Assembly: GCA_965649825.1 (NCBI GenBank)
Contig: OZ287698.1
Coordinates: forward strand, 201,949-265,948
Length of the DNA stretch: 64,000 bases
Reading direction: 5' to 3'
Origin: Penicillus capitatus
Taxonomy: Eukaryota; Plantae; Chlorophyta
Under the pieces are notes generated by a model. The model saw only the letters and a program-made list of their open reading frames with translations, ran no database searches and had not been told where the DNA came from. The first letter of the stretch is position 1. The number at the start of each line of letters is the position of its first letter. A program made the translations under genes and the position numbers. This document shows positions 2,475-50,407 of this stretch, piece after piece.

Positions 2475-5214
2475 ATGGCAGGTACGTGGCCCTGTCTGTT
2501 GCTGTTTCTCTTTTTCCTTCGTTGTCGAATAAATCGCGTCCGCGCGGTAGATAGAGCTCCGATCTGCGCAAGAGAGAGATTGGAGACGATTTTGAAGCAA
2601 CTTCCCGATAAACGTGCTGCTTTTGGACCATGGGAACTACGCACCGCCCCCTTCCTGAATCTGCAAGACATACTAGAATGGGAACCGGAGTTGAGGCCTC
2701 AAGACAAGCACTGTCGTTCCTCCATCCCTTTACAAGAATCGTACCGAACACATAACCCCCTTTTTGCGACAGAGTCTTCATCGACCGACCCGTCAACCGC
2801 CAATCTGTCAGATTTCACATCTGTTATTTTTCCTAAGGGTCTGTCTCTAGCGTCGCTGAAGAGAAGAGGGAACGTTTTCTTGTGAGTCATGATTATGGAG
2901 GTGGGTATTGGGAGGATCACTATTATCAAGGCTTTCGCGGAAAGGACACGTATTATCATATCTATGACTTTGATCTCATCGACATCTTCAACTTCTTTAC
3001 ACACGATCGCTTTCCGTCCCGCCGCCTGGATGGACACAACTAGCACACAAACACGGAACACACGTCCCTCCTTTACTGGACATCGCCCAGATGACGATAA
3101 CCGTCGCCGTTTAGGTTCTTGGAACGTTTTTGGTCGAAGGAAAGGAAGAGGAAGAAGGATTTGAAGACTGTCTTTCGATGCTGATGAATGACGTTATCCG
3201 CCAGCGTCTCATCGAACAGTTAGTGAAGATCTGCACATTTTTTGGATTCGAAGGGTATCTCCTGAACTTCGAGATCGATCTGGTCCGTGACGTTGATGAT
3301 CTCCTTCCATTTATGTCGACGGAACCTGTTCTGTCCCGCAGTCGAATCGAACAGACGTATCACATCTCATGTCAAATCTTCTCACTTTTGTTGACGATGT
3401 GACAGCCCAAGTGCACGCAACGGTTCCCGATGGACGCGTCCTTTGGTCAGAGATATCACACTTTTGTTTCTCTGTACTTAAGGATAATACTCTTAGGTAC
3501 GATGCGATTGCCTTTAAGTATGAGGACAGGGCAAAAGAAGGAGAGCTTAAATGGCAGGACTACTTGAATGAAGCCAATGTTCCTTTCTTCAAACACTCAG
3601 ACGGAATGCTGACCAATTACTACTGGCACCCAGACACGCTGCAGACCGATGTCCAAAACGCGTCCTCTAGACACATCGATGTCTTCAAAGGTGTGACTCG
3701 AGTGGACCTTCTGCCGTTTGGCGCATCTGCCAAGATCAGGTATCGATGTCTTTGCACGTGGCATCCCTTGTTATGCCGCTGGCCTTGGCTGTCTGTCTGC
3801 CATCGAGCAGATACAGAAATTCCACCTCTCGTGTGGCCTCTTTGCCCCTGTCTACTTCCATGAAACCTGCCCACCGGAGCGATCTCCAGTTCTCGACTCA
3901 GCAGAGTTCTGGAACGGAGTGCGATCCCGACAGAGCGCCGCTATCTGCACAACTGACAGTGACTGATTAGGTCAAGAAGGTGTGGAAATGGATACGCTTG
4001 CCAGCACAGCTGCCATTCCTGACGCATTTCTCCCTTGGCCACGGCCGTCGCTTCTTCATGGAGGGATCTGTTGTCCACACAGATGCATGGTTTGATCTAT
4101 CGTGGCAGGATGTCATGCCTTTGCACCAATACCGTACCTGCCTGCATGCAGCACGTCTTCTCACAGTGTTCTGGTAGGCCGCGCTGAAGATGGGTTCAAT
4201 GGCGGCGAGAGTCTTCTCTTAAGGGATTCCACATGCAGTGCGAATTCTCCTACTCATTTCCCACTTTACAAAACGCATTTCCGGTTAAGCAACTATCCAC
4301 AAGTCCCGTCATCCATCGACGACCAGTGTCAGCCTAAGGTCGTCGAATGTCTGTAGGTCATGGTCTCACTCGTCTACAGCTCAGAAGCTAGTGTCGGCCT
4401 ATGCCTTAAGCTCAAACATGAGCACTATACATATAAAGACTTTATGCTAAACATAACATCCAACGAAATCTTATTGCTTCCTGAAAAAGTAAGGCATACG
4501 GACAGGGACAAAGATCTCTCTGAAATCTTAGTATAGACCGATTCAGAGTCTAGCAGCATTGAGTGTGTGGAAAGCGTCATCGAAGAGAACGCTACAGAAT
4601 TCAGCAGTACAGCAGATGTCGAATTCTACCCCACAGAAAAAAGAACCTGGAAGAGGCTTAGGGCTAGCCTATGCACAACGGATGACATGAGGGATTACTA
4701 CATTGATCGCATCAGCATCATTGGATATCCAGCATCTGGTACAGAATTTGAAGCCAGGATTGGACAGCTTTGGATCTGCCCTTTACCAATCGCCCCATTT
4801 CACCATCCAACCGATTTCGCTGCGACAGATGTTCGGATATATCCGGAGCACTGCTCAGGTCATACGTCGTGGCAACATCTCTCTGTCGTCTAGGTCTGCG
4901 AGTCACGGGTCTTGTCTGTCATAGATGGTGGTGGTGGTGGTAGTCACGCATGGCGAGTGTTTGATTGTCAGCTGATTTGGACAACCACGTCCTCGCGAAC
5001 GGCTGTTTTTGTTCAAACCACATCCAGCGATACATCCATTCGTCCAAATATCTTCCTGGGTTGGACAACATCTCAGCATGGGTATTGGATTAAGAATCTG
5101 AAACTAAAAAGCGACGTGAACGGTCTCACGTTCCGTCTGAGTGTACTGGATGCTCAGGGAAAATGGACCGCTCTTTCAGATGCACCTGCCTGTCATGTTC
5201 CTACTGCGATATAA
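2475..5214 (+). CDS. ENGase: Endo-beta-N-acetylglucosaminidase (GH85, ENGase), about 11 exons, with one apparent -1 frameshift at 3011-3013
   Basis: Spliced motifs RFLVSHDYGGGY, DLIDIFNFFTH, VPPPGWTQLAHKHGTH|VLGTFLVE, FGFEGYLLNFE, RVLW|YDAI, SDGMLTNYYW and FKG|IDVFARG match GH85. Hydrophobic N-terminus from ATG 2475; stop TAA at 5212-5214. Confidence 0.88.
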
Positions 5215-5618: not shown

Positions 5619-6782
5619 TCATCTGGGACACACACAACCAAGCAACCGTATGGTATCCAATCGACGGATCGTATGGAGATGCCAACTTGAAATGGTGATT
5701 TTGCGGTTGGCCGTTGTATATGACACATGCTTGGTTTCATAAACAGTGGATTCCGGCGACAGGCGATTGATCGATGCACGTACTGCTTCTCCGTGACTCA
5801 CTATGAGAATATTGCTTCCAAAAAACTGATCGCATATGGTCTAGAACACGAGCAAATGATCATCTAGTATGTAAGCGCCGCCACCGTAGGTTCACGCACT
5901 TCCATTTCTTGAACATAGCGATCGCATGCTTGCTCGACGTTTTCTACTCGTCTTGGCAATGGCTTGTCTAGAACGGTTGCGCTTCCTTGAAGGCCACACA
6001 AACAGGGTTCTATCGGATGCACACAAACCCCATCTCGCACAAAGGATTCCATACATACGGAAGACTGGAGGTCACCGTTTTGTATAAAAGACTTGATGGC
6101 GTCCTGTAAATTGGCGCCGTTCCACATCCACGTCTCCAAACCACTGTTTGCTCTCCGATGATCGAATCCTGCCAGCGTTCGAGGCCCGTAAATCTGACAC
6201 ATGGATATCGATGTCACATCATAAAGAGTGAGAATGGGTAATGATGGACTTCTGAGAATTGCCCGTCGATGATGAGATGGTCTAGATCTAACCCAAGTCC
6301 AACGAGGATTTCTGCACTCGTCTGTAAGCACCTCAGAAAAGGCGATGTCACAACATAGTCTATGTTATATGCTCCGAGCACCGAAACCACAGAAGCAGCC
6401 TGTCGCCATCCGCCACGTCGCACTCATATATATGACGGCGAAGACGGTCACTTGATTTCGACCGCGCGGAGCAAGTGGAGGATCCCATGGACGACTCGAC
6501 CTTCGCGTAAAATTCGAGTCGACTTCGTCTTGCCTTAATCCGTGACGCATGACCAGGAGGTACTGCTGTCGGACTTTGTCTGAAGACACCGAAGAACGAG
6601 GATTCGACACCCGGATGCATCGAAAGGTTTCGAGACGAACTTGCTTCAGAAGAGGCGTCCGTTTTTGGACTGAGGAGTTCCTCGTCTTCGGCAGAAGAAA
6701 CGGGAGCCCCTCTCGGTCTGAAGCCAAAGAGTTGGGCAGCGCATTGCCGCAAACAACTGAATGCCGAGGCGAAACAAGACAT
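5619..6782 (-). CDS. Histidine phosphatase (phosphoglycerate mutase-like) family protein, multi-exon
   Basis: LLVMRHGLRQD (RHG motif), WDPPLAPRG, VVTSPFLRCLQTS and LIVSHGEAV are hallmarks of the histidine phosphatase superfamily. The exact ends are inferred. Confidence 0.85.
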
Positions 6783-6895
6783 TTGGAACAGTGAGTGGTT
6801 GCAAGACGTGTGTCACAAACGAAGTTTGCCGACGATCAATGTCATACACGCGACAGCACCGACCACCACTTCCGCGAAGTCGACGGGAACGCACT

Positions 6896-7811
6896 CTAGA
6901 TGATTTTAATGATTTCAATGTCGAAAAGCAAGGTCTTATCGATGAAGCCCTGATTCTCGATCACAAAACTGAGCGCTCGGCGGCCCTAAGGTTGACATCT
7001 CACTCATTATGGCTCCCATTCTCACTCTTTCTTACGGAGAAAGTGGTGGGTTTTGGACCGACTGTCTTGAAGCTGTTGTTTGGGTAGCCGAGACTCACCG
7101 GTACAACGATGCGACGGATGCTTCCTGTCCGGCGGATATTATGATCATAAAAGAGTGACAAGTGTGAGACCTCGTTGCATGCCATAGAGTGCTTCTTCGA
7201 AGCCAGGGATGACTTCGTGGGCTCCCACTTTGACGGCAAGGAATTCTTTTTCGTCTCCCATAAATGCGCCTCCTTTCGCCTACGACATCGTCTAATGAAC
7301 ACGAAGAAGAGTGAGAAATAGAGTGACGGTTGTCCGTAACCTTGTTGCGGGCTTCAAATGGGCGGCCATAGTATCCAATGGTGTAACCATCCCAGTCGAT
7401 CAGCACCACATCACCTATCCATCCATCCACACTCCTGTAGACGACGGCGATGCGATCTCTTGCCTTCTCGGACGACAGGACCGGTCCCGGATTCCAAGTC
7501 TTTGTACTGGAGACCCGAGTCTGTTGTCTTAAAATCTGGATAGCTGCCGCCAAATCGTCTTGGACTGCGGAGAGGCAGGGCGGAAGGCATAACCTCATCT
7601 GTGGCTTGCCATAGTCTTTCCCTTTCAGAGCTTCCATTTCCGTCAACTCTGAAGCGCCGGATCTGTCCATGAGGCTAAATAAAGATCCCAAAACAAAACC
7701 ACCGCCGGTCAGGAAGGCTCTCCTAAGAACAAAGCGAACGTTTGCCGTCGCATTCGTGGACATGCACCGTAAACATCGACCTGGTACGCATAGATTTAGA
7801 GAAATCGCCAT
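6896..7811 (-). CDS. FKBP19: FKBP-type peptidyl-prolyl isomerase, chloroplast thylakoid-lumen FKBP19 type
   Basis: DWDGYTIGYYGRPFEARNK|AKGGAF, GFEEALYGMQRG|SIRRIVVP..LGYP and NQGFIDKTLLFDIEIIKII* match plant FKBP19. The start codon is uncertain (7811 or further upstream). Confidence 0.9.
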
Positions 7812-8106
7812 CACATAGCACCACCCCCTTTCGCAGCGGTTCGGCACCAGTCCATAGCTTCCGTCTGTAACCAGCGCTTCCCTCAGTCTCATCGAGGAGA
7901 GATATCTGCGTTCTCGACCTCGCTGACGTCGGCAGTAGTGCATGGAAAGATGCAGCGCAACACAACGGCATGGTTGGAGTCATCATCGGGAAGGTGCCAA
8001 AAGCGACGCCGCCGCATTTAGATTGATGCGACCACGCCCTTTTGGGCAATCTTCGATACGCTTTCTCTCGCGCCAGACGTTTGCCATCGAAAGCGCGGTC
8101 AGAAAT

Positions 8107-9434
8107 TTAAGAACTGAAGAAAAGTCGTAAGGTATTCTGATAGATTTGTTCGGCAAGAACGGCGGGATCGATTACCTTGACGGCCGCCACGACATCCAGC
8201 ACTTGCCTGTCACATCAATGTCCTTATGAAAAGGCAATGGGTCCTGTCGAATGCACCTGACATGACACGGTTCGTTTCTGCCCTTGATCGGCAATACGCC
8301 GTCATGCTTCTTCTTATCGACCGCTTTCAAAAGATGCTCTGGGCGAACGTACGGCTTGCTGGCATGAGAGTTGCGAATCTCACAGTATGGACAGTCTGTC
8401 TCGATCATCATTCGATCCAACGGAATGGCAGACATGGCTTGAAGATTCTCTGCCGTCTTTAACGAGCAACCGTTCACACCTAGAGCATCGAATGCCAGAA
8501 ACGGCATTTCTAAGCAGGGCGGATTCTGTGCACCGATGTAGATGTTATCGAGGGCGCAAAGATTGGCAACATCTTCTGCCGTGCCTGTAAACGAGTGCAC
8601 CACGCCGCCGTAGAATCGAGACTGGTTCTAGACGCCATCCCAAAGTACGACGGTATATCTTCCACCGTCCGATGCGCTGCGGAGACGGACCTTTTGCAGA
8701 ATCTCTAAGAAATCGGATGCCGCTTCGCGCATGTGCAGAAACCTACAGTCCCTCATTGAAGAGCGAGATCGGCTGCCGGGTACGCCAACATGGGCAGATG
8801 CGTTTGCTCCGTCAGCCAAAACTGTGCGGCGAAATGCACGAGCTGTGTTTCTTTGCTGCAGAACTGCAGACGATCGTAATCTACAGAGAAGCGATCGCAG
8901 ACAAATCCCCACTCAACGGACGTGTGCGTGATACCGAGGCCACACTCTCCGATGGCAACCACTTTTCCGATCTCTTTCCCGCGCTGTGCAATTTCAAGCA
9001 ACGCTGTCAAATGCGACTCGCCGTTCTCGTCCAGTTCATCGCATCGGGTTGGATGCACACCGACGGTGCTGTACAAGGCGCCTAGGGCCACACCCAGCAT
9101 CGCTTTCTGAGATTGAGCGACAGGTCGCCTCACTGTTCGATTCTGCCAATGCCAGTGCCTGTTTCGAACTTTCCAGATCCCCTCCCGTCACGATGATCCG
9201 CTCGACATCTGTCGCGAACGTCGTGATGGGGAGGAGCGAACGTGAGGATTGGAGGGACCTGATTGCCTGGCCCTCTGCAGTACGGCATCGAGATCCGGTG
9301 GATGTACGGGCTTCCCGTAATAGATGCCTTGGTACATTTCATCCGTCAAGTTCGCTGCAATATCTGCCACAGTTGTTCTCTCGGCTCGACCGACAGGCGA
9401 AGCAACGAATGGCGCGTTCACCAATCAATCGCAT
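8107..9434 (-). CDS. TATDN1: TatD-family DNase (TATDN1-like)
   Basis: MRLI|[58 protein letters not shown] and C-terminal [14 protein letters not shown]. Confidence 0.93.
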
Positions 9435-9737
9435 TTTGTGAGACAGACAGCGCGTTGCCTTGTATAGGAATCTCGTGGCAGGATGTCGAAAAAACGGTAC
9501 GGCATGAAAGACGCTCATCGTCGCACAAACCAACGGCCCATACCGCCTCCAAAACGATCGTATTGGTCCTTTCTATCTAATGCAGTTCGGAAAAGCGACG
9601 CATGCGATCCAGGCCGAGCGCGCTGTCAGCGTTAGGATCCAGAGAGGAGATTGCTCAGCGGTGGACGCGGAGGGTGTCGTACAGAATCGCCCGAACACGT
9701 CCCGTCTCTGATCGCGATTCTGACGGCGTTGTGCGGA

Positions 9738-11043
9738 ATGGCCGTTCTCTTAGACTTCAGTCGCCCGTCCCTGCCAGCTCAGCTCAGACAACGCGATGCC
9801 CGAAGATATTCCCGTCGACGTCTCATTGTGTTCCTAGCGCAACAACGGACTGTTCGTGTCATCCATGCTCAGAACGAACCGACTTCCCAAATGGCGAAAT
9901 CTGCCAGTACCTGGCCAGAATCGATATCCAATCATTTTCATCCCTCCTCGAACTGCACGTCATCGCTTCGGGATCGCGCAGAGCGAAGAGGAGGCGGGAA
10001 TGGAGGTCCACCTACGGAAGGCAAAGGTCCCGGAGGAAATGGAGACGGCGATGCTGAGGGATCCGATGACGAGATACCTGAACTGCTCACTTTAGCCCAG
10101 GCAGAATCTCTGGCGGCTGAGAAAGGCGCACAACTGCCTGCCGATTTCATCAAAGCTGCCAAAGGATCTGGACTCAGAGCCGCCACCCTGCACAAATTCC
10201 TCCACCTTCAAGTAATCGCTCTCGATTTCTCACACTTTTGAAGAAAAGAGTGATCTAGTCTTTGGCGTGGATCGGATTTCTCGTCCGGATGTTTCCTTGG
10301 ATCCGAGATCGTTTCATCGCCGATCCCTCTTACCTCTTCAAGATCTTCACCGAAGTAACCGTCGATTCCGGTCTGTCCCTGACCCGTCCGTCTCCACTGT
10401 GAAAGAGGAGATGATGTGACTGGTAGGGTGTGCCACACTGGCCGAGATCCGCAAACGCGGCGCCGATTTCTTCAACGAATTCGAATTCTATCTATCGGAT
10501 CTGATCGTCGGTTTGGTTCTGGACGTGGCATTGGTGAGTCTGCTAGCCCCTGTGGCGGTGATCGGCAAGAGACCTGCGTCCGCCGCCAAGACTGGTCTGT
10601 ACAAATACCTGGCGCGTTTACCCAGTGCCATGTTCGAAGCCAACATCCCAGGCGTCCGTGAATACTCTCTATCCCAACGCATTGTCGGCTTCTTCTACAA
10701 AGGCATTCAGTACAGCGTTCTGGGTTTCTTCTGTGGACTGGCCGGTCAGGGATTGGCAAATGTGTTCATGGACCTGCGGCGTTACCTGGCTGGCGGCGCC
10801 ACGGAATCCGACGTCGCTGTTCCCCCTCTCTTCGAATCGGCACTCGTCTGGGCTCTGTTTATGGGCGTCTCGTCCAATACACGATATCAAATTGTGGTGG
10901 GGCTAGAGCGCGTTGTTGACTTGACGATTGCGAAGAGAGTGCCACAAATCGCCTATTTCACGACCATTCTCATCCGATTTGTGAACAATATCATCGGCGG
11001 CGAGAATTTTATTGATATGGCCAGATGGGCAGGAGTTCAATAA
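9738..11043 (+). CDS. RETICULATA-RELATED (DUF3411) chloroplast envelope protein
   Basis: A transit-peptide-like N-terminus and a Gly-rich stretch (GGGNGG...GGNGDGD) are followed by SDLIVGLVLDVALVSLLAP, PSAMFEAN, ALVWALFMGVSSNTRYQIV and NNIIGGENFIDMARWAGVQ*. Confidence 0.9.
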
Positions 11044-11120
11044 CGCAATGGTCACTCACTCTGTAAGGGGACGGTGCGAAAAAGCGAGATTCTTAGACGC
11101 AGGGTTTTGTGTCGCGAATC

Positions 11121-11928
11121 CTACAGGAACACAGCAACATCCAAGAAATCACCCGTCTGGAAATTCAAATCCTCTAATGTCTTATGATCATCTTCGCCAA
11201 CACGGGTCGAATGAACAAAGCCAACCTAGACAACAACAAACATCACACTTTTGATCGATCTCACTCTTTTAGGATCGGTCGCCGTACCTCCTTCATGACA
11301 TTGCGACCGTGACGATCGGGATAGATAAAAGAGAAAGACAAACGCGCGTTGGATTCTCTTGCATGACGGTCCACATCTGAAAAAGAGTGAGATCTCGATG
11401 ACAGCATAAGTGTGACCTTTGATCAGTTCCGTCAGCTCCCGGAGTGTTGCATCTTTCCAGGTGTGAATCTGCAACTCGTTCTTGGGCTCTCTTCCGCGTG
11501 GCTCAAAGTCCCGCAGCACGTGATGTCCACCAAACTATATTCATCACGCATATCGATTCTCACACTTTTCACACTTTTTACTTTCTCACCTTGATGAAGA
11601 CACGAAGAAGCAAAGGGCAGACCTGTATGATCGGCAGCTTCCTTTCGGTGTCTATCGTGTTCGATGGTTCACTTTTTCGCGGTCGATGCGTTTGGGCGCC
11701 TCTGTGATTTGACTGCGGATGTTCGGCTGTGGATAGCTTCCGGGATTGAGCCCTTCGGCATTGAAGCTCCCAAAGGCGCCAGAACCGGAACCCCCACTAC
11801 GCTGTCGTCGAAAAGCTAAAACGCCAATGGACACCGTCGCGTTTCTGATGCGGCGGATGTTGTTTACGTGGTCTATTCTGGACGTCAGCTGCCGCTTCTT
11901 CTGCTGCGCGGCGCAACGATGATGCCAT
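11121..11928 (-). CDS. SAP18: Histone deacetylase complex subunit SAP18
   Basis: Spliced PKRIDREK|VCPLLLRVFIK, ELQIHTWKDATLRELTELIK|D, FSFIYPDRHG and LNFQTGDFLDVAVFL*. The start ATG at 11928 is inferred. Confidence 0.93.
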
Positions 11929-11986
11929 ATCGATCGTCGTTGACGGAAAAATGATCCAATTTTGCATCGGCGTCGTCCCAAAGGCG
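11929..11986. promoter_or_regulatory. Very short divergent interval between SAP18 and COX10 (putative bidirectional promoter / overlapping 5' UTRs)
   Basis: 58 nt lie between the inferred start codons (22 nt if the in-frame ATG at 11951 is used). Confidence 0.5.
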
Positions 11987-13483
11987 ATGTTCCGTACCCT
12001 TCTGCGCGAGTCCCTATGCCAAACGCGTCGTCTCGTGTCATGGCGGCAATGCCTCTGGCGATCGACCTTATCTCTACCCGAGTCCACCTACCAATGGCGA
12101 ACGTTGAGACAGAGATTTGGCGATTATAAAAAACTGGCCAAAGCAAAGCTCAGTACCTTTGTCGTATTCTCAGCCGGCACTGGCTTCGTCTTAGCTTCCC
12201 CTGACGAAATCGGTTCAGATCCCGCGGCCACGCATGTGACTTTTGAAGGTTGGCGGCTGTCGTGCAGAGTGGAGTAAGCTCGGCGCAACGGTTGTTGGTA
12301 CGTTCGGCGCTGCCGCCAGTGCCAATGCTCTGAATCAAATCTACGAGAAGGAACGCGATGCCCTGATGCTGCGCACTCGATTGCGTCCATTGCCATTGGG
12401 TCGTCTATCAGTCCCCCATGCGATGGTCTTTGCTCTCGCATCGGGTTGCCTCGGTCTCACTCTTCTGTCACATCACGTCACAGCCCATTTCACAATCACA
12501 CTTTTTGACACGACATGTCTGTAGACCAACGCGGTCGCCACGACATTGGCAGCCAGTAACATCCTGCTGTACGCTGGCATTTACACACCGCTCAAACAGG
12601 TCACACATCTCAACACGTGGATCGGTGCGATTGTCGGCGCCATTCCTCCTCTCATCGGGTGCGTCCCTCTCCCTGATCTCCGCCTCGGCATCGATCGGAT
12701 CCCGATGCAGATGGTCTGCCGCATCGGGGTCGTTAGATCCGGGAGCGTGGCTGCTGTTCTCTGCCCTGTACTTCTGGCAGATTCCACACTTTCTCGCATT
12801 AGCCTGGACCTACAAAGCCGACTACATCCACGCAGGTAACGACCACGTCAGCAAGGTCCCATCACAGAGATGCTGCCTTATGTATGGATCACAGGATTCT
12901 GTATGATGTCGAAACTGGATCCTAACGGAAAGCGACTGGCGGCCTGCGCCTTCCGTAACTGCATCTACCTCCTCCCCCTGAGCTTTCTCTCCGCCTACCT
13001 CGGCGTAAGGCGATGAATAAAAGAGTGAGATTCTGAGTGTGACCGATAGCTTCTGTGTCTATCTAGATCACGACGCATTGGTTCTCCTACGAGTCCTTTT
13101 TCATGACAATGGGATTTGCCCTTTCGGCATCGACCTTCTATCAGAGGCCCACTAAGCAGTACTCGAGGACGCTCTTCCGTTCCAGCATCGTATACCTGCC
13201 TCTCTATCTGCTGGCTCTTCTTTATCATCGACTTCCTGCTTCGGCGCATCTCACATGGGGCCAGCTGATGGATGTGCTCAGACAGGGATGGCGTCGATCA
13301 CGAGATGCTGTCACATCATTTCCGGATTTAGAAGATGATCTTTCGGATCAACATCTGGCGCTCTTTGCGCCATTCCCTTTTGTTCCGCTGCCCACTGCCT
13401 CAACGCCCTCATCGTTTTTGTGGGAAGGATTGGATGACGTCATTCAAGAGTTTGACCAAAAGTCAAGAAACGCACTTGTATGA
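11987..13483 (+). CDS. COX10: Protoheme IX farnesyltransferase (heme O synthase), mitochondrial
   Basis: [80 protein letters not shown] and [20 protein letters not shown]. Confidence 0.95.
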
Positions 13484-13717
13484 CCCATTGGCAGGCAGAC
13501 GCCTCTCCTCGACGCCTGTCGTATGTTCGTTCGTGCGTTCGTTCGCGTGTGTAATGTTTTGATTAAGACCTCCGCGGCGTCGTCGTCCTCCTGCGATATC
13601 GATTACCCGTTTCCAGCAAAGCTGCTTACTCGACGCGTCGTTTCTGCTGTGTCTCGTGTCTCTGGTCGTCGGGTCGTGTGATATCTTCTTTTCATCTGTG
13701 AAGTTGGTTGTTGATTG

Positions 13718-14300
13718 ATGATGGTCGGCAAATCAGGATTGCGACGCAGTTCAGGGGGACCTTGCAGCCATTGCTCTGTCACAGTGACGCCGTGTTGGCG
13801 CAAAGGACCACCCGAAAAACCGATTCTCTGCAACGCATGCGGTGCCCGGTATCTGGTCAAACGTACGTTGGACGGATATATGCCTGGTCAACGGAATGGA
13901 GCGCCGACACGACATAAACGAACCAATACACGCGAGAGAAAAAACGACTCTTCCAGTAGCGAAGTGGATCCATTTGAGCCACCACGAACGAACAAACACA
14001 CAAAGCAAGACCCCGAGCACCACCCATGCAGCAGCACTGCATCCGCCATCAACACCTGTAGGGTGCTCGAGATCGCCAGCCGTCATCGCAGTTTGCGTTC
14101 CTATCACACATCAACAGAAACGGTAGATCACTTGAGTGGTGGTATGGATGATGGAGTGACGGTGCGTCGGCTGTGTATAGGGATGTTTGGAGAATAAGGC
14201 ACGTATGGCAGCCTGTACATTAGCACTGCTGCGTTGTACGGCTCTTTCTGCATCTTCCCGCTCGTCCTCGTCATCTTCCTCCAAGTCCGTGCAGTACTGA
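13718..14300 (+). CDS. GATA-type zinc finger transcription factor
   Basis: C-x2-C-x18-C-x2-C ([27 protein letters not shown]) is followed by a basic region. The unspliced ORF stops at 14197; a 37-nt intron (14162-14198) would extend it to TGA 14298-14300. The 3' end is uncertain. Confidence 0.8.
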
Positions 14301-14972
14301 GCTGATGAAGCAGTACGATGAGATCGATCGACTGAGTGCGTTCCTACGATCGATCTTCGCCGACGCCGTTGTCGCCATAACAAAAATATAGAGACTCCTT
14401 CCTCTACGCAAGGAGCATCTATCACCAAGATGGCACTCTCGATGGAGCAAAGGTGTTTTTACTTCTTTTTGCATCCTAGAGTTCTTAGATCTTGGCATTT
14501 TGAATAAACCCATGTGTCAATGGGAAGTTAAGGAGACCAGTTCAGTCGTGTCCACGAGAGGGGTTCCCGATCTTGCTCCATTCATTCTGTTTTGTTTCAG
14601 TTTTTGATATCTGTCTCGTCGTAGGAGTCCCCTTCATCATAATAAAAATGCCGAACGTGCATTGGGGATGCAGCATCCGTGCGACACAGGAACTGCCCAC
14701 CACACACACAAACATTCCTCATCATTGATTCTGTCTCGTTGTTGTCGTTGTCGTTGTTGTTTTGATAATCGTTTTGATGGACTCTCTGAACTGGGGAAGT
14801 AGCTCTCTTCTTTTTCGGTTTTGGGCGCGGGAGAGTAGAGAACCAACAGATAGACATGCACTGCCATGAAGACAGATGCTGTCCAATTGCTTTATTTATC
14901 TTGTAAGAATGCATAAGGAGTCATTCCAATGAACTGAGTCAAACGAACGAACACACGCACGCACGCACGCAC

Positions 14973-17900
14973 TCACTTGCCAAACTGTAAGCAGTGCTTG
15001 ACAGCTGACTGTCGCACACGCCGCCTCTCGTCATCCAATCTCAGCATCAACTCCCTTCGCACCTAATACATTTTGATCTAGTTGATCATCGAAGACATGT
15101 AGAGTGGCGGCGCGCCTCTCACTTTTTTCTCATAGTGCTGGTTGTCTTCCATCGTGAGGATCCTTCGAAATGCAGTCATCATACACGACATGGCCTGGAT
15201 GCGCACTTCTGCGTCTCTTTCATAGGACACAGATCCAGTCACAGTCTCCATCGTCTCGTTCTTGAAGCATCTTGCACGACAGACAAGGTTCATGTCTTCG
15301 ATGTCATCCACCAGTCATGCTCACTTGAACATCTCTGACGCCTGTGTTGCGTCCAACAGACCAGAGAGCACGGCGAGCGTGGAGATGAGAAGTGGATCGG
15401 TATGCAGATGCATCGTCGTCTGCGTTGTGTGGAGAAGTTCAATGAGCTTCAGCATCCAGGGTACGATGTTCTGCCCTTCCATCTTGACAAACGCTGCAGC
15501 AGACAGGTGCGATGAGAAGACATGCTGTCTGTCACGCACCATCGGCTGCCCCACGGATGAGCGATCCAAACGCCAAGAGGCTTCCTTCGAAACAGCATTT
15601 CTCTTCCAGTCTTGGGAGGATGGTCTTCAGACAGAGGGTAAATGCACGCTGTCGGTGGATAGGTGTCTGCCACACATCGCTGCCTTCGATGGTGTCATCA
15701 CACATCGTCACGTGTTCTCCGTGGCTGTCCGATACGATAAACGGAATGCCGGTGTTCACAAGACCTCTGCCGGATGACATTGTATGACTCTCCCGATGCC
15801 AGAACGCATGGAGGATCTCGCACAGACAAGGCAAAACGCTTTCGATGGCGAGGAGACACGTCTTGTATGAGCATGGGCTGCTGATGACCGCTTTGAGACA
15901 GGCACAGCTCAGCATGGCCAATCCGGATATGCCATCTGTCTTTTCGGCTATGGACGCCGCTAGTGCTCTCCCTAGACTCTCCATACATGTCTGCTGAAAA
16001 TCCTCTGCTCTGCCGACATCGCTCTTCAGCAGGCGGAATCCGGCAGCAGAAGCAGCTTGGAAGGACAGACTGGGTTTGTTCTTGCCGTGTTCGCTGTCTT
16101 CTAAGGCAGATGCTGAATTGATGCATTCGGCAAAGAAGAGCAAGGCTGTGTTTGTATCGGCCAACGCATGATGGACATGCTTCAGTCCACAGAACACGGC
16201 AAACTTCCACACAAGAGGCCGCCCACCGACCTTCTTCCGCGATACCTTCTCAAACACCTCTACACAAGACAGGGAGAGAATGTCATGGAGGTGTTTCTCT
16301 CCCTCTCGACGTGCCTTTCTGCTTGAGATCGTCAGCTCTCTGCATCAAGGAAGAAAGCAAGAGGCGAAGCTCTTCCAGTAAGTCAAGAGACAGATTTCTG
16401 CCCGTGCTTTCTTTAATCGATGTCTCTTCTGTCAGAGCTGCCGAAGCATCCTCCTTCGATCCGTCATCATTGCTCAGGACGAATGTGATGAAGATGTCCA
16501 ACAGCAAATGTGTGATGGCCATATCCGTTGTCTCTTGCGAAGCCAGCAACTCAGTTCTCAAGAAATGCAGAACGGATGTGACAAAGCCCTACACCAGACA
16601 GACATGGGCGCGTCATCCACACATCACACTTTCGCATATGTGTGACCTGATTTCGACGATCGATGGATGCCAGTGTCAGCCAATGCTGCAGATGGTCGGC
16701 CACGTGGACCAACAACTGACGTCTGCTGCTTTCGCCTGTAGATGCCACGATGGATAAGATTCCGAAGGACAAGTCTCCAGGCGTCTCCGATTCGCCCGTG
16801 TATACGTGCTTGGAGGAACTCTCAGAGTGACCGTCCTTCGGAAGCAGATGTAGTATGCAAAGACGTCTCCATTCCTCACGCATCTGCACGGCTCTCTCTT
16901 TTGGTCGATCGGCATACAGCATGAACCGTAGGATGGCCAATACGGTGGTCTGCTCTGAGACTGAAGCATCGGCCGCCCAATCTGTGTCCAACGGAACGCC
17001 ATCAGCCAGGCATGAAAACAGGATCGTCGATCTGACCTGCTAGTCGAGAAAGAATCGATTGTGTTTGGGATATCCCATCGGCATCGGGGAGAAAACTGAG
17101 GTGCAGATTCAGATAGAGCAGATCGAGGCTTAACAGCGACATGGTCGAAATCAGGCCTGTCGATCGCACCTCTTTCGTCTGTTCTGTATCCTTCTCGATA
17201 TCTGTTGGCACCAGATCAGAGGGGAGAGGGGATGCGTGCCACAGTACTTGACAAGAGGAGCAATGCAGATGAGAAAAGCTCGCCCAGCGGTTTGAAAACG
17301 GTCGTCAGCAAACTGCCCGAATCCTCCTTTTCATGAAGGATGTGACACAGTTCATGAAAGGTCTCGTGCAGGACACGGATATACCGATGCACAGGACTGG
17401 CATGTCTACTCGATTCGATCCCTGTACAGAACAGTGCAACACAGAGATGAGGGTCGATGAAGGAATCATGTACCGTGACCTGCAGGCCGAGATCGCCATT
17501 CCTCATAAACCGTGCTCAAATCCTGCATGAGCGGATGCAGTATGCTGCCTATAGACTTGAGTATGGAGCGCCGGCTCATCCATGTCACCTAGGCCGATGA
17601 CGTGACGGCATGCGTCCAGCAGCGCCATCCGTGCTCACTTTTTTCAGCAGAATGACTCCTGGATCATCTAGAAGATCCCCCATCGTCTGATCCAGACCAT
17701 CCACATTCCTCAGTTTACGACGCACGTCCCGCACGTGTTCGTCTGTGAAGACGAGGTCTGGGAACAATTCAGCCTCTACTCCCTGCACATCTCCCCCATG
17801 TCTGCATCAACAGATGATGTGACAGGCGTCTACTGCTTCTGCATCGACTTGGCAGAGCGATTGGACAGTTTGGATGGCCACGTGCTGTAGCTCACTGTCT

Positions 17901-19143
17901 AGATCTGCCCTATCTGCAAAGATATGTCTCTTCATCTCCGACCACAGAGATCCGAAATACTCCGACAGGATCTCCACAGGAAACTTCGCAGCTCCGCACT
18001 GCAAACACTCGAATGCACTCCGTATCGCCACCCTTCTAGAATCTTCTGCACCAGTAGGGAGACTTGATGGTCATCACCTGTGATCCGATGTCAGTTTCTC
18101 AAGTACGAGCGGCAAACAGTATTCAGCGAATGCTGCTGTACACGTCATGGCTGCATGGAGTCCATCGGTCAGCACTTTGGAAGTGACAACCGTCTGTTCC
18201 TCCATGACAAAATCGTCTACACCAAACGCGGCAGTCCTTCTGGCGATACAGAATGGAGAATGCCTGTGTCTGTTATGGGAAAGTAGCACGAGACGACATC
18301 GAAAAGCTCTTCCGCAGCTTCCTCGATGGCAGATGTCTTTTTCAAGAGCTCCACTGTGGAAGGGATGATTTTGAAGACGGTCAGCAGACAGCGCGGATCT
18401 TTTTCGCCATCGATCGATCCCACAATCCACTCCACCAGATTCAGATCCTTCCGCTCTCGACAGATCTTCTCTCCCATTTCCTGAAGCTCTCTTCCAGAGA
18501 AGAGCTCTGCCTAAGCGATTCGCGATACCGTGTCAAGGAGCCGATGGAGGAGCTGAAGTGCGACGACACGTTGCGACGACCGAAGAGATGGCACATCGAT
18601 CGAGGCAACGACGGTATCCACCAATACCAGCAAAGCTTCCACTTGGAGAGGCGATGGATGGGGAAGGGCAGAGACCATTGCCAGACATCCATGCAATCCA
18701 CTCATCATACAAGACCTAGTCGGGATGGTATGCCAGCAGCCAGAGGGTGTCGAGATCGGACCAATCACGAAGACGCGATGCAAAAAACGTCGCCAGAATG
18801 AGAAGCTGCTCGGAAGCTAGCGACTGCAAAGACGGTTCCACCACCTGAAGCGTACTCTGTCAGCAGGCACCTGTCATGAGTGGTATACAGACTTGTATGA
18901 GGACAGCGCACAGAGGGTCCCTCTTTTGGACATCTGCTTTAGATAGCGCATCCTCCAGGGCTTCAATCTGATCAGGAGAAGGCGTTGGCTTCTTGTGGAG
19001 AGATTTTCTACCGATGGACGGTATCTTACGAGTCGTTCGATCGAAAGGTCTCCTTTCTGAAGGGATTGCTGCAGTGACAGTATCGTCTCGCTGTTGTCTT
19101 CCTCTCGCAGGGCGCAGTGAAAAGCGCGGGTCACATCAGCCAT
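14973..19143 (-). CDS. MMS19: MMS19 (MET18) cytosolic Fe-S assembly / DNA repair HEAT-repeat protein, many exons
   Basis: The N-terminus contains WIVGSIDGEKDPRCLL and ELFDVVSCYFPIT; the C-terminus reads EVRIQAMSCM and LRLDDERRRVRQSAV...*. Both match the MMS19 N- and C-terminal domains. Confidence 0.9.
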
Positions 19144-20793
19144 GATGCTCACGCGCAATCAGGGAGGGAACTGTCAAAGACATGCGCCCCTTGTGATATG
19201 TGACGTTCTCAAGGGTATGATGGGGGATGAGGCCGATGCCAAGTTGCATGGGCAATCTCTGACGTGCACCTCACACTCAAGTCTGTGACATCTTGGCTTC
19301 TCACTGTTGGGGACGCCAATGAGCTGTCGTGTCCGTACGGTCTGTCCTGGGGAACACGTCGGACAGTCGTGCGCCTTCGTCGGTGCGGAACCGTCGTCTT
19401 CGCATACGTGCGTAAAAAATTGCGCCTTCAGTAGAACGATTGGCCAGTTTCTGTCAGAAATTCGTGAGCCGTTGGACGCCTCGCCACATACACAGTATAT
19501 TTCTGTTATGGAAGACCCCTTGTACAGTAGACACATGCTTCGTCTCTGCCGTATTATTGTTATGTCTGTCCACATTCACCACCTGTCCTATTCATTTCTA
19601 TGAAGTTTTCAGAGTATTCTTATCTTCGGTACACAAAGTTAATGCCTTCTGGAATCTCGGTCACCGTGTTCGCCATGCATCTCTCCGTTCTTGTGCATAA
19701 AAAATTTAACTTGACAACGAACGCCGCAGAGCGCAGATGAAGAGACAGTTCTCAAAGCAAGCTGTCGTTCAGCAATCTTTCATCGATGAATACATAAACC
19801 GACCCAACCGTCGAAGCAGGCATTAACACAGAAGACAATGGATTCTGAGTATCTACCTCCTGCTATCTGTTGTCATTCGGTCAAGCGCGTTTGGCATCGG
19901 CCATGGGTGCCGCGTAGTGAATATTTTAAAAGCCAAAACGTTTGACACCTAATTCATCATGAGTCTCTATTTAATGCTTCGATCGCAGCATCCCATCAGT
20001 TCTGTGTCTCGCATCGGACTGTCATCTTTCCGATCCCTCGTCACCAATGTGACAGCATGGTTCCGTACCATGAGGAGTTCACAATGTTCAGTGAGGTTCA
20101 CTTCCTCTGTGCAGCACGTTCAAAATCGCCATTGTCTGTGGTGTCGCAAGGCAAAGCCAACAAACAATGTTGCTCTCTTAAGATTTAGAATTGGTCGTGC
20201 TTACAGCCCCTTTTAGGTTAGACATCAGAAGCGCAACTGTGTTCAGTACAAGACCAACGATCGACAAGCACTGCGACAGAGATGACTAAGGAGAAGAATA
20301 AAATGTGTCTCTCTTAAGAGTTGTCGCGTAGAACAGCTTAACAGCGAGAGCTTCATCTTCTTTCTCGCGCGATGCCTGTTGTCAAGATGCATCTTCTGAA
20401 TTCGTCAGACGCCAGCAATGTCCAACCATTCACGACTGTTCTGTCGTAAAGATGTCGGCACACTGCCCTCCCACATCATGAATTGACTGGAGACGACAGT
20501 GTTGAGGATCGCTGTTGCGATTCGGTGCAGTAATCCGTGCTAGATAACAAATCTAAGCGGATAGGTGCATGGATATTATCGTCTATTGTGCAAGGCAGTA
20601 TTTGCCCTGAGGTATCTACTTGGCACTTATAACAAGAGGCATCGTTTCGACTGTTTTACTCGGCCAGCAGTTGATCATCAATGTCACAACGCATGGAGAC
20701 TTAATAAAGGTGCCATAATGATAATGGACATGTTCGAGAAAAAACAGCAAAATCTGCCAGAAGACAAAGAAATTTGCAACTTCCTCAGCCGCC

Positions 20794-21046
20794 TTAGTCT
20801 CCTCCGTTACCTCCACCATTCCCGCCTCCGTTACCTCCACCACCATTCCCTCCTCCGTTTCCGTCTCCACCTCCATGGCCACCGTAGTCACCACCACCAC
20901 CACCACCACCTAGAAAGAAATTTGAATTGTTCTTTTCGTAAGTAAAGAACGGCAGTTGCTAGATGGATTGTTGGATCACCTGCGCTTGTCGTCCTGGATC
21001 TACCTCCGCGATCCTCGGTCATTTCTTTGCCGCAACACGCACCCAT
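20794..21046 (-). CDS. 60-aa glycine-rich peptide with an N-terminal myristoylation/palmitoylation-like MGACCG motif
   Basis: Exon 1 (21046-20980), a 70-nt GT-AG intron (20979-20910) and exon 2 (20909-20794) give MGACCGKEMTEDRGGRSRTTSAGGGGGGGDYGGHGGGDGNGGGNGGGGNGGGNGGGNGGD*. Confidence 0.6.
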
Positions 21047-21355
21047 GGTAAACAGATTCAACACAGGGCACGTCCAATTCCACCGCTTAACTCTCTTGCG
21101 GTTGTTCGCCGACTTGAAATGGAAACGCACCAAAGATAGACAAATACCAAAACACCACAGGCTTTAACGGAATCCCACACATCCATGTCTAAATGAATGC
21201 ATCTGTTTACCATTTCCGGGATTTGTTCGTGTCTCAATGACCACCATTGTCTCTCATCGCATCTCACAGCGACCCCTCGCGGTTCTCGCCTTGTTGCGCG
21301 TTCACCTGGTAACCCGTTTCCGGTCGACGCTTAGAAACCGGATAGAGAGAAATCG

Positions 21356-21835
21356 ATGCGAAGCCGAAGTCCATACGTCCCATCACGCTCGCCGATGTCG
21401 AGTGAGAGCGAGGAGTTCGACGTTCCCAGCGACGCAGCGTTGCTGTATGATCCCTTATCCGACGACCGAGATGCGCAATGGGTGGGGAAAATGCGAAAGG
21501 GACGAAGCTCTGATGCCATACTGAGCTGTCCGTGCTGTTTCGTCACCCTCTGCGTCGACTGTCAGCACCACGACTCTCAGCAAAACCGTTACCGAGCCAT
21601 GTTCGTCATGAACTGCAAGGTCACACATCTCACTCACCTATGCCGTCACATCAGCCTCCATCCTCAGGTTATGACAAACGAAAAGGAATCCCTTTGTCGA
21701 TCCAATGCCGCTCGTGGTCGCATGGCCGAGAGTGAGGGATGCATTGTAAAGTGTGAGAAGTGTGAGTGTGAGGTTGGGTTCTACGATGCAGATGAAGTGT
21801 ATCATTTCTTTAATGTGTTACCAAGTACTGCCTGA
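21356..21835 (+). CDS. EAPP: E2F-associated phosphoprotein (Eapp_C domain)
   Basis: LLYDPLSDDRDAQWV, SDAILSCPCCFVTLCVDCQHH, YRAMFVMNCK|V, CEKCECEVGFYDADEVYHFFNVLPS*; one in-frame intron. Confidence 0.9.
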   Translation: MRSRSPYVPSRSPMSSESEEFDVPSDAALLYDPLSDDRDAQWVGKMRKGRSSDAILSCPCCFVTLCVDCQHHDSQQNRYRAMFVMNCKVTHLTHLCRHISLHPQVMTNEKESLCRSNAARGRMAESEGCIVKCEKCECEVGFYDADEVYHFFNVLPSTA

Positions 21836-21844
21836 ACGGCACGG

Positions 21845-22747
21845 TCATGACATTGGCCAAAAACACGCAACACACAAACCCAGCACAGCGCCGCCGACGA
21901 CCTACATCGATCCTTTCGTTGAATGACGGACGTCACATCAAAGATGGGTCACACTTCGCGTCGGGAGTGACCCAGTACTTCCTTCAGCGTGGTTTGATCT
22001 CCCATCTCCGAACGCAATCCAGACACCAGCTGATTGAGGATCTTTGCTTGATATCCTTTGCGCAGCAAAAGAGTGAGAATATGTGTGACCACGCTTTGAT
22101 GTGGCACACCTGCATGTCGACGGATACCTGCCGCATCGTACATAACGATAGCACTGAAGCAGAAGGCCATAGCAAAGAGAGGACTTCCCAAACCTTGCTG
22201 CAGTGCCACAGATGTGGTCACAGCCTAGAGGGATGATCATCAAGAGTGAGAAAAAGAGTGAGATGGCCTTACGACACAAGCAGAGGAATGAGAGGAGGGC
22301 ATACCTCCCGACATCACCAGCGATCTCAGATCAAACCGTCCGTTTCTTATGTACTCCGTGAAGAGCTATTCTTGACATCGACACCTCAGCCAGTCCATCG
22401 CTCTCACTCTTTTCTCAGTACCTTGAGCAGCTGCGCGGCGGCGCACGATATGAATCCGGTCACCAGGATTCGGTTATTCGGCAGATCACTCCATCCATTC
22501 CCGGGCAGCGTCGGAACAGACAACGACGCCAAGGTCACACACATCCTCCTAACACCAATGTCGCCGCTGAGGCTTTTGTCCACAGACAGCGCCCGGTCGA
22601 CCTATCCGGTCTCGTGTTTTTCGCAAATGGCCGATTCGCATGGCGCGGCAGAAGACAAGGCGTCTGTCGATGCGGGATCCTTCCAAAGAACCGCCCGTTG
22701 TCGCGATCGACGCAGTGCGTGGACCGAAGAGAGAATACAGCTGGCAT
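21845..22747 (-). CDS. Acid phosphatase / vanadium-dependent haloperoxidase-related protein (DUF212)
   Basis: AQLLK|LFT, SGGMPSSHSS, IVMYDAAGIRRHAG, AKILN and LKEVLGHSRRE|VVGGAVLG. The start is uncertain. Confidence 0.9.
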
Positions 22748-29666: not shown

Positions 29667-30788
29667 ATGGCACAGTTCGAAGGCGGTGGATATCTCGAAT
29701 CGTATCTTTCTTATGGTTCTTCTCGCCTGAACGTGTTTCTCTCCTAGGCGTCCGAGTGACGCACACGAGGGCACGCCCCGGAACGTGTACAGCAGCGTAT
29801 GTCTATGATCGCTGATGGCCGCTGATACGGGGGTCGTTCTGTAGCGCACTCAAGACACCAACACGTTGAGAGCGTTCACTCTCCGCCAGTTCAAGATGGT
29901 TCAGTCGCAGCGTCGTTGACACGTTGTAAGACGTCATGTCGCATAGGGTCACGAGTCGATGCAAGAGAGCGCAGCCGACGCCGTTTGGATCGACGGCAGC
30001 GAGACGAATAATGTCGAGATATGCGCGACTCTTTCGGGTTCTTAGGTTGGACGTTGTGCAGGTTGTCCTGGTGGGCGAGATCATGTCTATGGAGGAGCAG
30101 ACCACCTGCTGGAGGTATATCATCGATGATGGTACCGAAGTGATTAGTGTAAGGCGTTTCAAAGAAATGAAGAGCACCGGTCCTGATGAACCCGAAGTCC
30201 GTGCCGATTAAAAATTACATCCTAAGTGTGAACGTTGATGATGACAGGAGGACAGAGATGGGCTGGAGGTGGGGATGTGGGCGAAGGTGCACGGACACTA
30301 TCGTCTATTCGCAGACGGAGGCTTCTGTGGCGCATTTTCGATCCGTCCAGTGATGGATTTCAACGAAGTCGATCGCGAGCTCCTCTGATCTGCAAAGAGC
30401 CGTTTGGATGTAGATCACGTGCCACTTCGCCAGATGCATCCACCAGCATCTCTACTTCACCAGAGGACCTCCTCCCTCGCGAACGACGAAGCAGGCCGTC
30501 CCCCAAACGTCCTTCGGCGGAGAGAGTCTGCGCCGCACCTCCGTTCCGCCTCCGATGACGACAGCGGTAGCGACAGGAGGGGAGGCACAGGGTAGTGGAA
30601 GTAACGAGATGTCGGAGGCCGTCCGGCATCTGCTGGTGGGAGGAGAGGAGTTGCACATCGATGAGATCTGTCGCCGACTGGAGGACGACTTCGGGAAGCG
30701 GAAGATCAGAGATGCCGTCAAGGAGATGGCCGACCAGGGACTGCTCTACGTCGGATCCTCCGAGGACACATACGCGTGGAGCGGATAG
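29667..30788 (+). CDS. RPA2: Replication protein A 32-kDa subunit (RPA32/RPA2), copy 1, 7 exons
   Basis: MAQFEGGGYLES|RPS, NTLRAFTLRQF, WIDGSETNN|VVLVGEI, YIIDDGT, WAKVHGH, FSIRPVMDFNE|ITCHF and a C-terminal winged helix. It splices in frame throughout. Confidence 0.85.
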
Positions 30789-49040: not shown

Positions 49041-49441
49041 CACCTCTCGTCACTGTTAAGTCCCATGGGATGACGAGTCGATTGCGTGGGCGGATAGTCT
49101 TATCCGTGGAAAAGGACAGAACATTCCCCTTCCCTGTGCAGTTGATGATGTCTTGCAGGTCCGTGCTTCTCGAGCACAGTGTCGTTGATATGCCACACTC
49201 TCCCTTCGAGGAGTGTCTCAATCTCTTCTGTCTTCAGAATGCAGCCACTGTCTGCACAACATCGTTTGAGAATCACGACGCGTCGAGATTCGCTCGAAGA
49301 ACCGTCAACGTTCGGCCGCGCCGAGAGAAAACGCACGAATCAAGACAGCGAGTAAAAATGGCGCGGCGGTGTCGATGAAGAGATTCCCCAAGAGCTTCGA
49401 ACAACGATAAGAACGGTTTTCCGATGGCGGCGGCGATTCAT
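49041..49441 (-). pseudogene. Truncated 5' fragment of the Pmp-repeat gene
   Basis: Copy of 32039-32435 only. It carries a +1 insertion (GAGAAGCACGGACC versus GAGGAGCACGACC) and a GT-to-GC change at the putative first donor. Confidence 0.75.
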
Positions 49442-50102: not shown

Positions 50103-50407
50103 TCATGCCACTTTCACATGACGGGCTTCGGAGACAGCCGCTCTCTTCGTATAGAGACTGTACAGGTAGCGTCCCGTGAACATGTCCGTCAGGCAGCCGA
50201 GACGTCTTCGCCACTTCGACCACCATGTCTCTTCCTGCCATGGACAGTTGCCGAGCGACAGTTCGGACGCTGGGAGAGCCATACCTTCTCTGGACAGTCG
50301 GGAGCGGAGAAGGACTCTTCCTGCATGTGGGCCAGCGTTCCGTAGGCCATGGCCAGGGCGACTGCCGCGGAGACGGCGACCAAAATGAAACGCATAGGAC
50401 AGACCAT
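50103..50407 (-). CDS. 84-aa small membrane protein, copy 2
   Basis: Same exon structure and identical protein to 31062-31366; the intron donor GT is retained. Confidence 0.75.

Follow-up and report, generated by a model that had tools for sequence, protein, structure and literature searches.

A perfect 14-bp inverted repeat is split over two introns of a SAP18 gene in the stretch of the Penicillus capitatus genome analyzed here (64,000 nucleotides, called the window below; all positions refer to it). The repeat is best explained as two opposite-facing copies of a short, intron-confined sequence family, the pair itself being a by-product of the density of this motif; we put the probability of this reading at roughly 0.55. 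Counts of the motif show that the family is lineage-specific and strongly over-represented, and that it is almost confined to introns. The bracketing pair is part of a larger phenomenon: this siphonous green alga has a strand-symmetric sequence family that is restricted to its mini-introns.

The arms of the repeat are GATCTCACTCTTTT at 11257-11270 on the plus strand and its exact reverse complement at 11381-11394; an earlier, sequence-only reading of this DNA had reported the repeat as split over two SAP18 introns, and both its coordinates and its exact complementarity were re-found in the sequence. SAP18 lies on the minus strand and its translation yields the SAP18 protein, with exons at 11590-11622, 11417-11534, 11288-11376 (89 nt) and 11121-11225, which bears out the claim that introns of 62 and 40 nt bracket the 89-nt exon. 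The intron lengths are, in order, 50, 55, 40 and 62 nt, and an additional 52-nt intron probably lies upstream. The exon junctions are backed by two intronless JGI contigs of relatives, L001 (89% protein identity) and L005, on which SAP18 is convergent with the RER gene, the same arrangement as in the window. These contigs are most simply, and probably, metatranscriptome complementary DNA (cDNA), and the 89-nt exon is included normally in the cDNA-like contig L001. The features of the region are as follows:

11257..11270, plus strand: arm 1, GATCTCACTCTTTT, which reads AAAAGAGUGAGAUC in the SAP18 precursor messenger RNA (pre-mRNA); an antisense copy within intron i4
11381..11394, minus strand: arm 2, GATCTCACTCTTTT; a sense copy within SAP18 intron i3
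11226..11287, minus strand: SAP18 intron i4, 62 nt, purine type, GTACGG..AAAAGAGTGAGA..AAAAGTGTGATG..TTTGTTGTTGTCTAG
11288..11376, minus strand: SAP18 exon bracketed by the repeat, 89 nt, DVDRHARESNARLSFSFIYPDRHGRNVMKE, also in L001
11377..11416, minus strand: SAP18 intron i3, 40 nt, pyrimidine type, GTCACACTTATGCTGTCATCGAGATCTCACTCTTTTTCAG
11535..11589, minus strand: SAP18 intron i2, 55 nt, purine type, with tandem antisense units GTGAGAAAGTAAAAAGTGTGAAAAGTGTGAGAATCGAT...

Arm 2 ends 4 nt short of the CAG acceptor, which places the A of UCUCAC 11 nt from the 3' splice site. The complementarity of i3 and i4 extends beyond the 14 bp and, if two gaps are allowed, takes in 28 of 35 positions (score 36; the best of 500 shuffles scored 24), and the reverse complement of i4 aligns to 35 of the 40 nt of i3. 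By our own arithmetic, about 0.05-0.1 perfect 14-bp inverted repeats within 400 nt are expected by chance in a random sequence of this size. Within the motif family the perfect 14-nt match is not exceptional, because 12 of the 171 pairs of motif copies share at least 13 nt, regardless of their distance or orientation.

A motif family in very short introns

The repeat is a member of a motif family with the core TCTCACWCTTTT. At no more than two mismatches the 14-mer occurs 9 times in the window, against 0.93 expected, the 11-mer TCTCACWCTTT occurs 14 times against 0.12 expected, and the commonest 10-mer of the window is TCTCACTCTT. Nearly all exact copies of TCTCACWCTT (18 of 19) lie between 6.2 and 29 kb, in intron-rich housekeeping genes. 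The 24 introns of the block 6895-13066 amount to 1215 nt (19.7%), yet they hold 8 of its 9 exact copies (binomial probability about 2e-5), and 8 of these 24 introns bear a copy. The spacing between motif copies is about 120-185 nt, and their density is uneven among neighboring genes, being high in SAP18, DUF212, FKBP19 and RER and low in TatD, MMS19 and ENGase.

The intron figures come from about 30 introns of the single 64-kb window, curated by homology and reading frame. They were curated by hand because ab initio gene finding (Viterbi with codon usage, a self-trained periodic Markov model, and chaining of open reading frames) failed, and it failed because codon bias is very weak, 0.03-0.09 nat per codon, with open frames that chain on both strands. 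The set comprises five introns of SAP18, two of RER, seven of TatD, three of FKBP19 (plus one uncertain), four of COX10 (plus two uncertain) and three of DUF212, together with single introns of a phosphatase-like gene, Eapp and MMS19. Intron lengths range from 40 to 63 nt, and the acceptors are YAG. The donors had been described as weak, and so they are: in 27 curated introns (6194-22421) GT alone is constant, C stands at +3 in 9 of the 27, and the canonical GTRAG is found in about 5. Besides those of SAP18, the introns carrying the motif include the following:

6194..6249, minus strand: intron of the phosphatase-like gene, 56 nt, sense copy; the model comes from open reading frames only
6986..7035, minus strand: FKBP19 intron f3, 50 nt, two antisense copies; its exact 16-mer CCCATTCTCACTCTTT is common to the 6194-6249 intron
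7125..7170, minus strand: FKBP19 intron f2, 46 nt, sense copy from +2, hence the donor GTCTCACACTT
7280..7340, minus strand: FKBP19 intron f1, 61 nt, sense copy
10212..10258, plus strand: RER intron r1, 47 nt, a sense copy and a weak antisense copy forming a hairpin (z = -2.1)
13005..13066, plus strand: COX10 intron c5, 62 nt, antisense bipartite cassette, with a partial resemblance to SAP18 i4 that runs along the whole length
22056..22109, minus strand: DUF212 intron d3, 54 nt, sense copy 11 nt from the 3' splice site, with GTCACAC internal
22225..22272, minus strand: DUF212 intron d2, 48 nt, two tandem sense copies; about 24 nt are complementary to d1
22366..22421, minus strand: DUF212 intron d1, 56 nt, antisense copy at +9

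The sequence-only reading had described a family confined to introns, running in both orientations and at variable distances from the splice sites, and the intron counts and curated introns support this description. Its recurrence in both orientations and at variable positions was confirmed in six of the nine genes that had been named, the phosphatase-like gene, FKBP19, RER, SAP18, COX10 and DUF212 (the others being ENGase, DSK2 and IMPACT). One copy that would be counted as intronic under that reading is exonic instead:

12455..12466, plus strand: exonic copy TCTCACTCTTCT, coding part of GLTLLSHH in COX10 and closely followed by intron c3 (12477-12524)

Two further coding copies occur in the window, at 21749 (Eapp) and 57912 (an NB-ARC-TPR gene). 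Confirmed intergenic DNA, including the spacers of 32-64 kb, contains no copy of the motif. Upstream of the window, 6.6 kb with a long terminal repeat (LTR) retrotransposon and an ARC6-like gene are free of it too; a miniature inverted-repeat transposable element or other dispersed DNA repeat was rejected on these grounds. The motif is likewise absent around the orthologous genes (0 copies in 23.6 kb of Ostreobium quekettii and 0 in 25 kb of Bryopsis). A metagenome search for the pair TCTCACWCTTT N95-125 AAAGWGTGAGA returned 11 loci, every one an unrelated long palindrome, and an Rfam search of the window gave no match. A long minisatellite as the source of the motif was also discarded, as Tandem Repeats Finder (TRF) shows 2-copy arrays only. 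The literature searched holds no account of this motif, nor of introners in Bryopsidales.

Several observations were made alongside these counts. The TatD introns (8207-9258) are GC-rich and motif-free, with five of the six listed at 54-62% GC and t7 at 46%; the introns of FKBP19, RER and SAP18 have 35-55% GC (exact-copy carriers 35-44%) and are motif-rich, so that motif density is gene-specific. Introns i4 (11226-11287) and c5 (13005-13066), both of 62 nt and in divergently transcribed genes, have the same layout, GTA.GGCGA..TAAAAGAGTGAGAT..GTGTGAY..TCTAG. A possible GC-AG intron in FKBP19 (about 7415-7467, minus strand) is required for an open frame, at a position that is intronless in Bryopsis. 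The LTR retrotransposon just upstream of the window (L022, 2371-6864) has protease, reverse transcriptase and integrase frames and is without a motif copy.

The two orientations of the motif

Exact copies in confirmed introns are sense in eight cases (the 6194 intron, f2, f1, r1, i3, d3 and two in d2) and antisense in five (f3, i4, i2, c5 and d1). When 12-mers with at most one mismatch are counted in genes of known strand, the ratio of sense to antisense is 10:10, and the genomic strand of the copies is unbiased (8 on the plus and 11 on the minus strand). All eight sense copies of the confirmed introns have the A of UCUCAC at 11-41 nt from the acceptor, with CUUUU after it. The sense copy is thus most plausibly a branch point (UCUCAC, of the yUnAy type) joined to a pyrimidine tract, as suggested by its place in the intron. 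Sense copies have the location and the yUnAy core with following pyrimidines of a U2-type branch point; the enrichment of the sense orientation alone that belongs to such a signal is missing, since 5 of the 13 exact intronic copies are antisense. U12-type signals (the donor RTATCCTT and the branch site TCCTTRAY) occur in no curated intron.

The antisense copies read AAAAGWGUGAGA, and the introns that host them are purine-rich and without a pyrimidine tract. Often a GUGUGAY stands downstream of the antisense copy, and it is a plausible branch point. In three introns (f3, d1 and i2) the antisense copies look as if the real donor had been copied in near-tandem. Many members of the family are bipartite, with RTCACAC, a gap of 4-17 nt and then TCTCACWCTTTT, an arrangement that occurs in both orientations. 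Furthermore, an ATCGA- flank is common to sense (i3, r1) and antisense (i2, i4) copies, and a CCCAT- flank to the sense copy of the 6194 intron and an antisense copy of f3, giving the exact 16-mer. These non-signal flanks, common to both orientations, are the main argument for favoring copying or flipping at the DNA level over two independently selected RNA signals.

For the strand symmetry, with its retention of the exact reverse complement, the most economical account would be copying or inversion at the DNA level among existing introns. According to the preferred reading, the family, with its core and the RTCACAC that commonly lies 4-17 nt upstream, occupies much of the ~50-nt introns at ancient positions. 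The sense core would act as branch point and pyrimidine tract, and the antisense core would give purine-rich introns in which the likely branch point is the GUGUGAY that follows, the antisense copy itself being neutral, or else a U1-like site within the intron. The exact reverse-complement identity, flanks included, would have come about through copying at the DNA level among mini-introns that already existed, or through small inversions in them. A pair flanking an exon would then arise when neighboring introns each hold a copy in an orientation close to random, and the duplex across the exon would be a by-product.

A more ambitious version of this account, which we regard as a tentative possibility, is a strand-symmetric cassette of roughly 12-35 nt that has spread or been flipped among shrunken introns in a pyrimidine type (UCUCACUCUUUU) and a purine type (AAAAGAGUGAGA). 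The cassette, and not the donor, may then mark the introns, and duplexes between opposite flavors could modulate splicing order or exon inclusion.

Two other sets of words were noted beside the motif. A second over-represented word, TGATGTGACAG / CTGTCACATCA, is found window-wide (GTCACATC occurs 23 times), with examples at 8207-8256, about 3354-3402, 10371-10426, 11410, 12477, 16646 and 21620. One of its orientations terminates introns (..GATGTGACAG) and the other yields unusual GTCACAY donors (SAP18 i3, COX10 c3, Eapp and MMS19), so that it behaves two-way, like the main motif. GTCACAC was rejected as a general donor, being internal in DUF212 d3. Palindromes centered on GATC are also over-represented (TCGATCGA 18 times and ATCGATCG 15 times, plus TGATCA, AGATCT and GGATCC), and they often adjoin the motif within the introns 11226-11287, 11377-11416, 12659-12710, 7125-7170 and 22225-22272.

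Pairing across exons, intron age and rival explanations

An RNA-pairing code had been proposed by the sequence-only reading. In such a device, neighboring sense and antisense copies would base-pair in the pre-mRNA and loop out the exon between them, and this would govern exon definition, skipping or circularization, or else conceal both the branch point and the pyrimidine tract of the pyrimidine-type partner. The existence of four exon-bracketing inverted pairs (two in SAP18, one each in DUF212 and FKBP19) fits this idea, as does the fact that no purine-type intron is without a partner of the pyrimidine type in its own gene. The i3:i4 duplex, consisting of the 14 bp and an outer 9-bp helix, is predicted in the minimum-free-energy (MFE) and centroid folds of both a 211-nt (z = -2.1) and a 385-nt (z = -0.2) context, and so is a d1:d2 duplex of about 24 nt in DUF212 (z = -0.4); these two pairs show the inverted sequences and predicted pairing of complementary repeats in flanking introns, and the f2:f3 duplex of FKBP19 is weaker (z = -0.5). 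In three of the four larger contexts, though, z is only -0.2 to -0.5. Among adjacent motif-bearing introns, 4 of 6 cases are opposite and 2 of 6 are the same, no excess over the 2.9 opposite cases expected (p about 0.3; small sample). Moreover, in a 9 x 5 matrix of pyrimidine- versus purine-type introns the complementarity within a gene (26.0) is not above that between different genes (24.3; permutation p = 0.21), hence there is no pair-specific matching, and scores of 30-32 arise between introns of unrelated genes. A general hairpin structure inside the introns was rejected as well, the mean z of single introns being -0.12 over 20 introns; the motif-rich introns consist almost wholly of pyrimidines or of purines and hence can scarcely fold. 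The paired 12-14 bp are short in comparison with known circularizing repeats, the reading frame would be shifted if the exon of 89 nt or that of 118 nt were skipped, and the exon is present in the transcripts of relatives. All of this makes a pairing device improbable. An inverted repeat designed to bracket the exon is not supported, and the pair is best read as what motif density and near-random orientation predict.

Decayed introners had been offered as a second origin, the motif being the remnant of a mobile element whose insertion, in either orientation, created the introns. A repeated, lineage-specific, intron-only family in both orientations would suit this view, and i3 is a complete mini-intron made of the cassette alone (GTCACAC..TCTCACTCTTTTTCAG), with GTCACA donors recurring in i3, c3, Eapp and MMS19; there is also precedent in short introner classes with a conserved branch motif, such as Micromonas IE-C of about 67 nt (PMC3879977). 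The positions of the introns speak against it. Those of SAP18 i1, i2 and i4 are common to Bryopsis, where the introns measure 516, 824 and 308 nt, and are found in Selaginella too; i1 and i4 are also present in Chlorella. The position of i3 is missing in Bryopsis and Chlorella, and in Selaginella an intron lies within a codon's distance. RER r1 and r2 are at positions common to O. quekettii and Bryopsis, both of which have 4-5 extra introns, FKBP19 f1-f3 at positions common to Bryopsis, and COX10 c3 at one common to Chlorella (COX10 was compared with Chlorella, as the protein search gave no bryopsidalean genome match). All nine comparable motif-bearing introns (i2, i3, i4, r1, r2, f1, f2, f3 and c3) thus lie at shared positions, or within one codon of one in the case of i3, and because of this they are considered old and shrunken rather than created by an element. 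Novel introns born from the cassette with GTC donors were dismissed likewise, c3 and f2 being at ancient positions. The alignable part of the introns is the 12-16-nt core, with a mean column identity of 44% in both intron classes (exceptions are i3 versus the reverse complement of i4, and in part i4 versus c5), and neither terminal inverted repeats nor target-site duplications are visible at the ends of the curated introns. The trend of the lineage is net intron loss, not gain. From the positions compared, an introner origin of the tested introns is contradicted, and the explanation as a whole is highly improbable.

Two further explanations concern the symmetry itself. The two orientations might be separate RNA signals that are complementary by coincidence, namely UCUCAC with a U-run (branch point and pyrimidine tract) and an A-run with GUGAGA (a U1-binding enhancer resembling a 5' splice site), the GUGAGA enhancer being tandemly duplicated and both signals amplified by slippage in introns of minimal length. 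The reverse complement of TCTCAC is indeed GTGAGA, and the antisense unit of f3, d1 and i2 stands after the real donor in near-tandem (GTAAGAAAGA/GTGAGAA; GTGAGAAA/GTAAAAA/GTGTGAAAA/GTGTGAGAA); tandem sense units are present in d2 and f2, and the weak real donors could be helped by additional U1 sites. This coincidence seems rather unlikely, as it does not predict the 12-16-nt identity or the shared non-signal flanks ATCGA and CCCAT; in addition, A or T, not G, precedes GT in the antisense unit, and an internal GTGAGA would be a competing, frame-shifting donor. Alternatively, the motif could be a signal in double-stranded DNA, either the intronic target of a DNA-binding protein or an element defining chromatin or linkers, for which the strand is irrelevant, like an orientation-independent enhancer. 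Independence of the direction of transcription, the absence of a genomic strand bias, the sharp differences in density among neighboring genes and the spacing of the copies agree with this proposal. It is unlikely, given that promoters and intergenic spacers, where copies would be expected, are without them and that sense copies always fall within the branch-point window.

The reading of the repeat as two copies of an intron-confined family, multiplied by copying or inversion, has its own difficulties. Copying should leave intergenic copies and none were seen, and therefore intron-specific seeding or selection must be assumed. The putative branch-point role of the sense copies is read from their position only. 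The sample is small, and the models of i0, f0, c0, c1 and the phosphatase-like gene were drawn from reading frames alone. Finally, the strongest complementary pairs are local and the predicted i3:i4 and d1:d2 duplexes are in both MFE and centroid folds, so that pairing may have a role. The two best pairs, i3-i4 and the 6194 intron with f3, are 124 and 796 nt apart, a locality that hints, in a statistically insecure way, at local copying or template switching. A greater length of local than of distant inverted copies was considered and dropped, the difference being non-significant.

Other features of the window and known intron systems

The RER protein is closest to that of Caulerpa lentillifera (80% in the last exon), with Bryopsis and O. 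quekettii at 58-60%. When the gene (9738-11043) is compared with L003 and L004, 4-5 introns that are kept in Bryopsis and Ostreobium have been lost in this lineage, and the others have shrunk to about 50 nt, from 300-1900 nt. Gene order at FKBP-RER is conserved with Bryopsis. On this evidence the alga belongs to the Bryopsidales, C. lentillifera being its closest sequenced relative. Elsewhere in the window, long genes without introns (PMP-repeat and LRR) form a block of ~16.6 kb between the two arms of an inverted segmental duplication of 2.4 kb (30024-32436 versus 49041-51446, 90-99% identical). An inverted pair of LRR paralogues (40771-42331 versus 52377-53937) is 82-88% identical, and a perfect 104-nt direct repeat occurs at 55458-55561 and 56062-56165, the copies being 604 nt apart. 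Ten tandem units of 129 nt (60141-61601) code for the TPR repeats of a 1548-aa NB-ARC-TPR protein (56950-61596).

If the pattern of the motif family is true genome-wide, the architecture would be an unusual one, in which ancient introns have been cut to about 50 nt with donors that are nearly free of information, and about a third of the introns keep a strong internal signal in both orientations. This bears on how minimal introns are recognized once the classical signals decay, on the homogenization of short sequences between introns at the DNA level without new introns, and on how often complementary repeats that flank an exon and seem designed are a by-product of motif density. It would also provide a practical signature for annotating genes of Bryopsidales in metagenomes.

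In animals, reverse-complementary matches in flanking introns promote exon circularization or skipping, and they are usually tens to hundreds of nt long and located in long introns. The SAP18 repeat is similar in that inverted repeats are present in both introns around an exon, and different in that it has 12-14 bp (28 of 35 positions with gaps) in introns of 40-62 nt, with pairing not above chance.

Extended conserved motifs at the branch point or 3' part of the intron are known from species with few or short introns, such as TACTAAC in yeast and GACTGACG in Ostreococcus (Irimia and Roy 2008, PMC2483917; PMC3879977). The present family likewise has a lineage-specific consensus far longer than yUnAy, which in its short introns lies toward the 3' end, with a run of pyrimidines and YAG after it; unlike these motifs, its reverse complement is about as frequent, its distance from the 3' end varies (11-41 nt) and it is found in about a third of the introns. 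With the introners of Micromonas and other algae it shares the properties of a repeated green-algal intronic sequence, lineage-specific and virtually absent outside introns. Introners are alike over their whole length, occupy new positions and have raised the number of introns, whereas here 12-35 nt are shared, the positions are ancient and introns have been lost or shrunk.

The internally symmetrical introns and (stw)introns of the Hypoxylaceae have terminal inverted repeats of 45-55 nt (PMC8469720). They resemble the present case as families built on the complementarity of donor-like and branch-like sequences, capable of forming double-stranded RNA; there, both arms lie in one intron and near-identical copies are found at novel positions, and here the arms are usually in different introns at old positions. 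The BOC1 mini-introns of Mamiellophyceae are shorter than 75 nt and AT-rich, with weak or non-canonical splice sites and no discernible branch motif (PMC3879977). The introns of the window are similar, as they are very short green-algal introns (40-63 nt) with a GC content below that of the exons and very weak donors, clustered in some genes. In contrast to BOC1, described without a conserved signal, they carry a strong one, and their host is a bryopsidalean ulvophyte, not a mamiellophyte.

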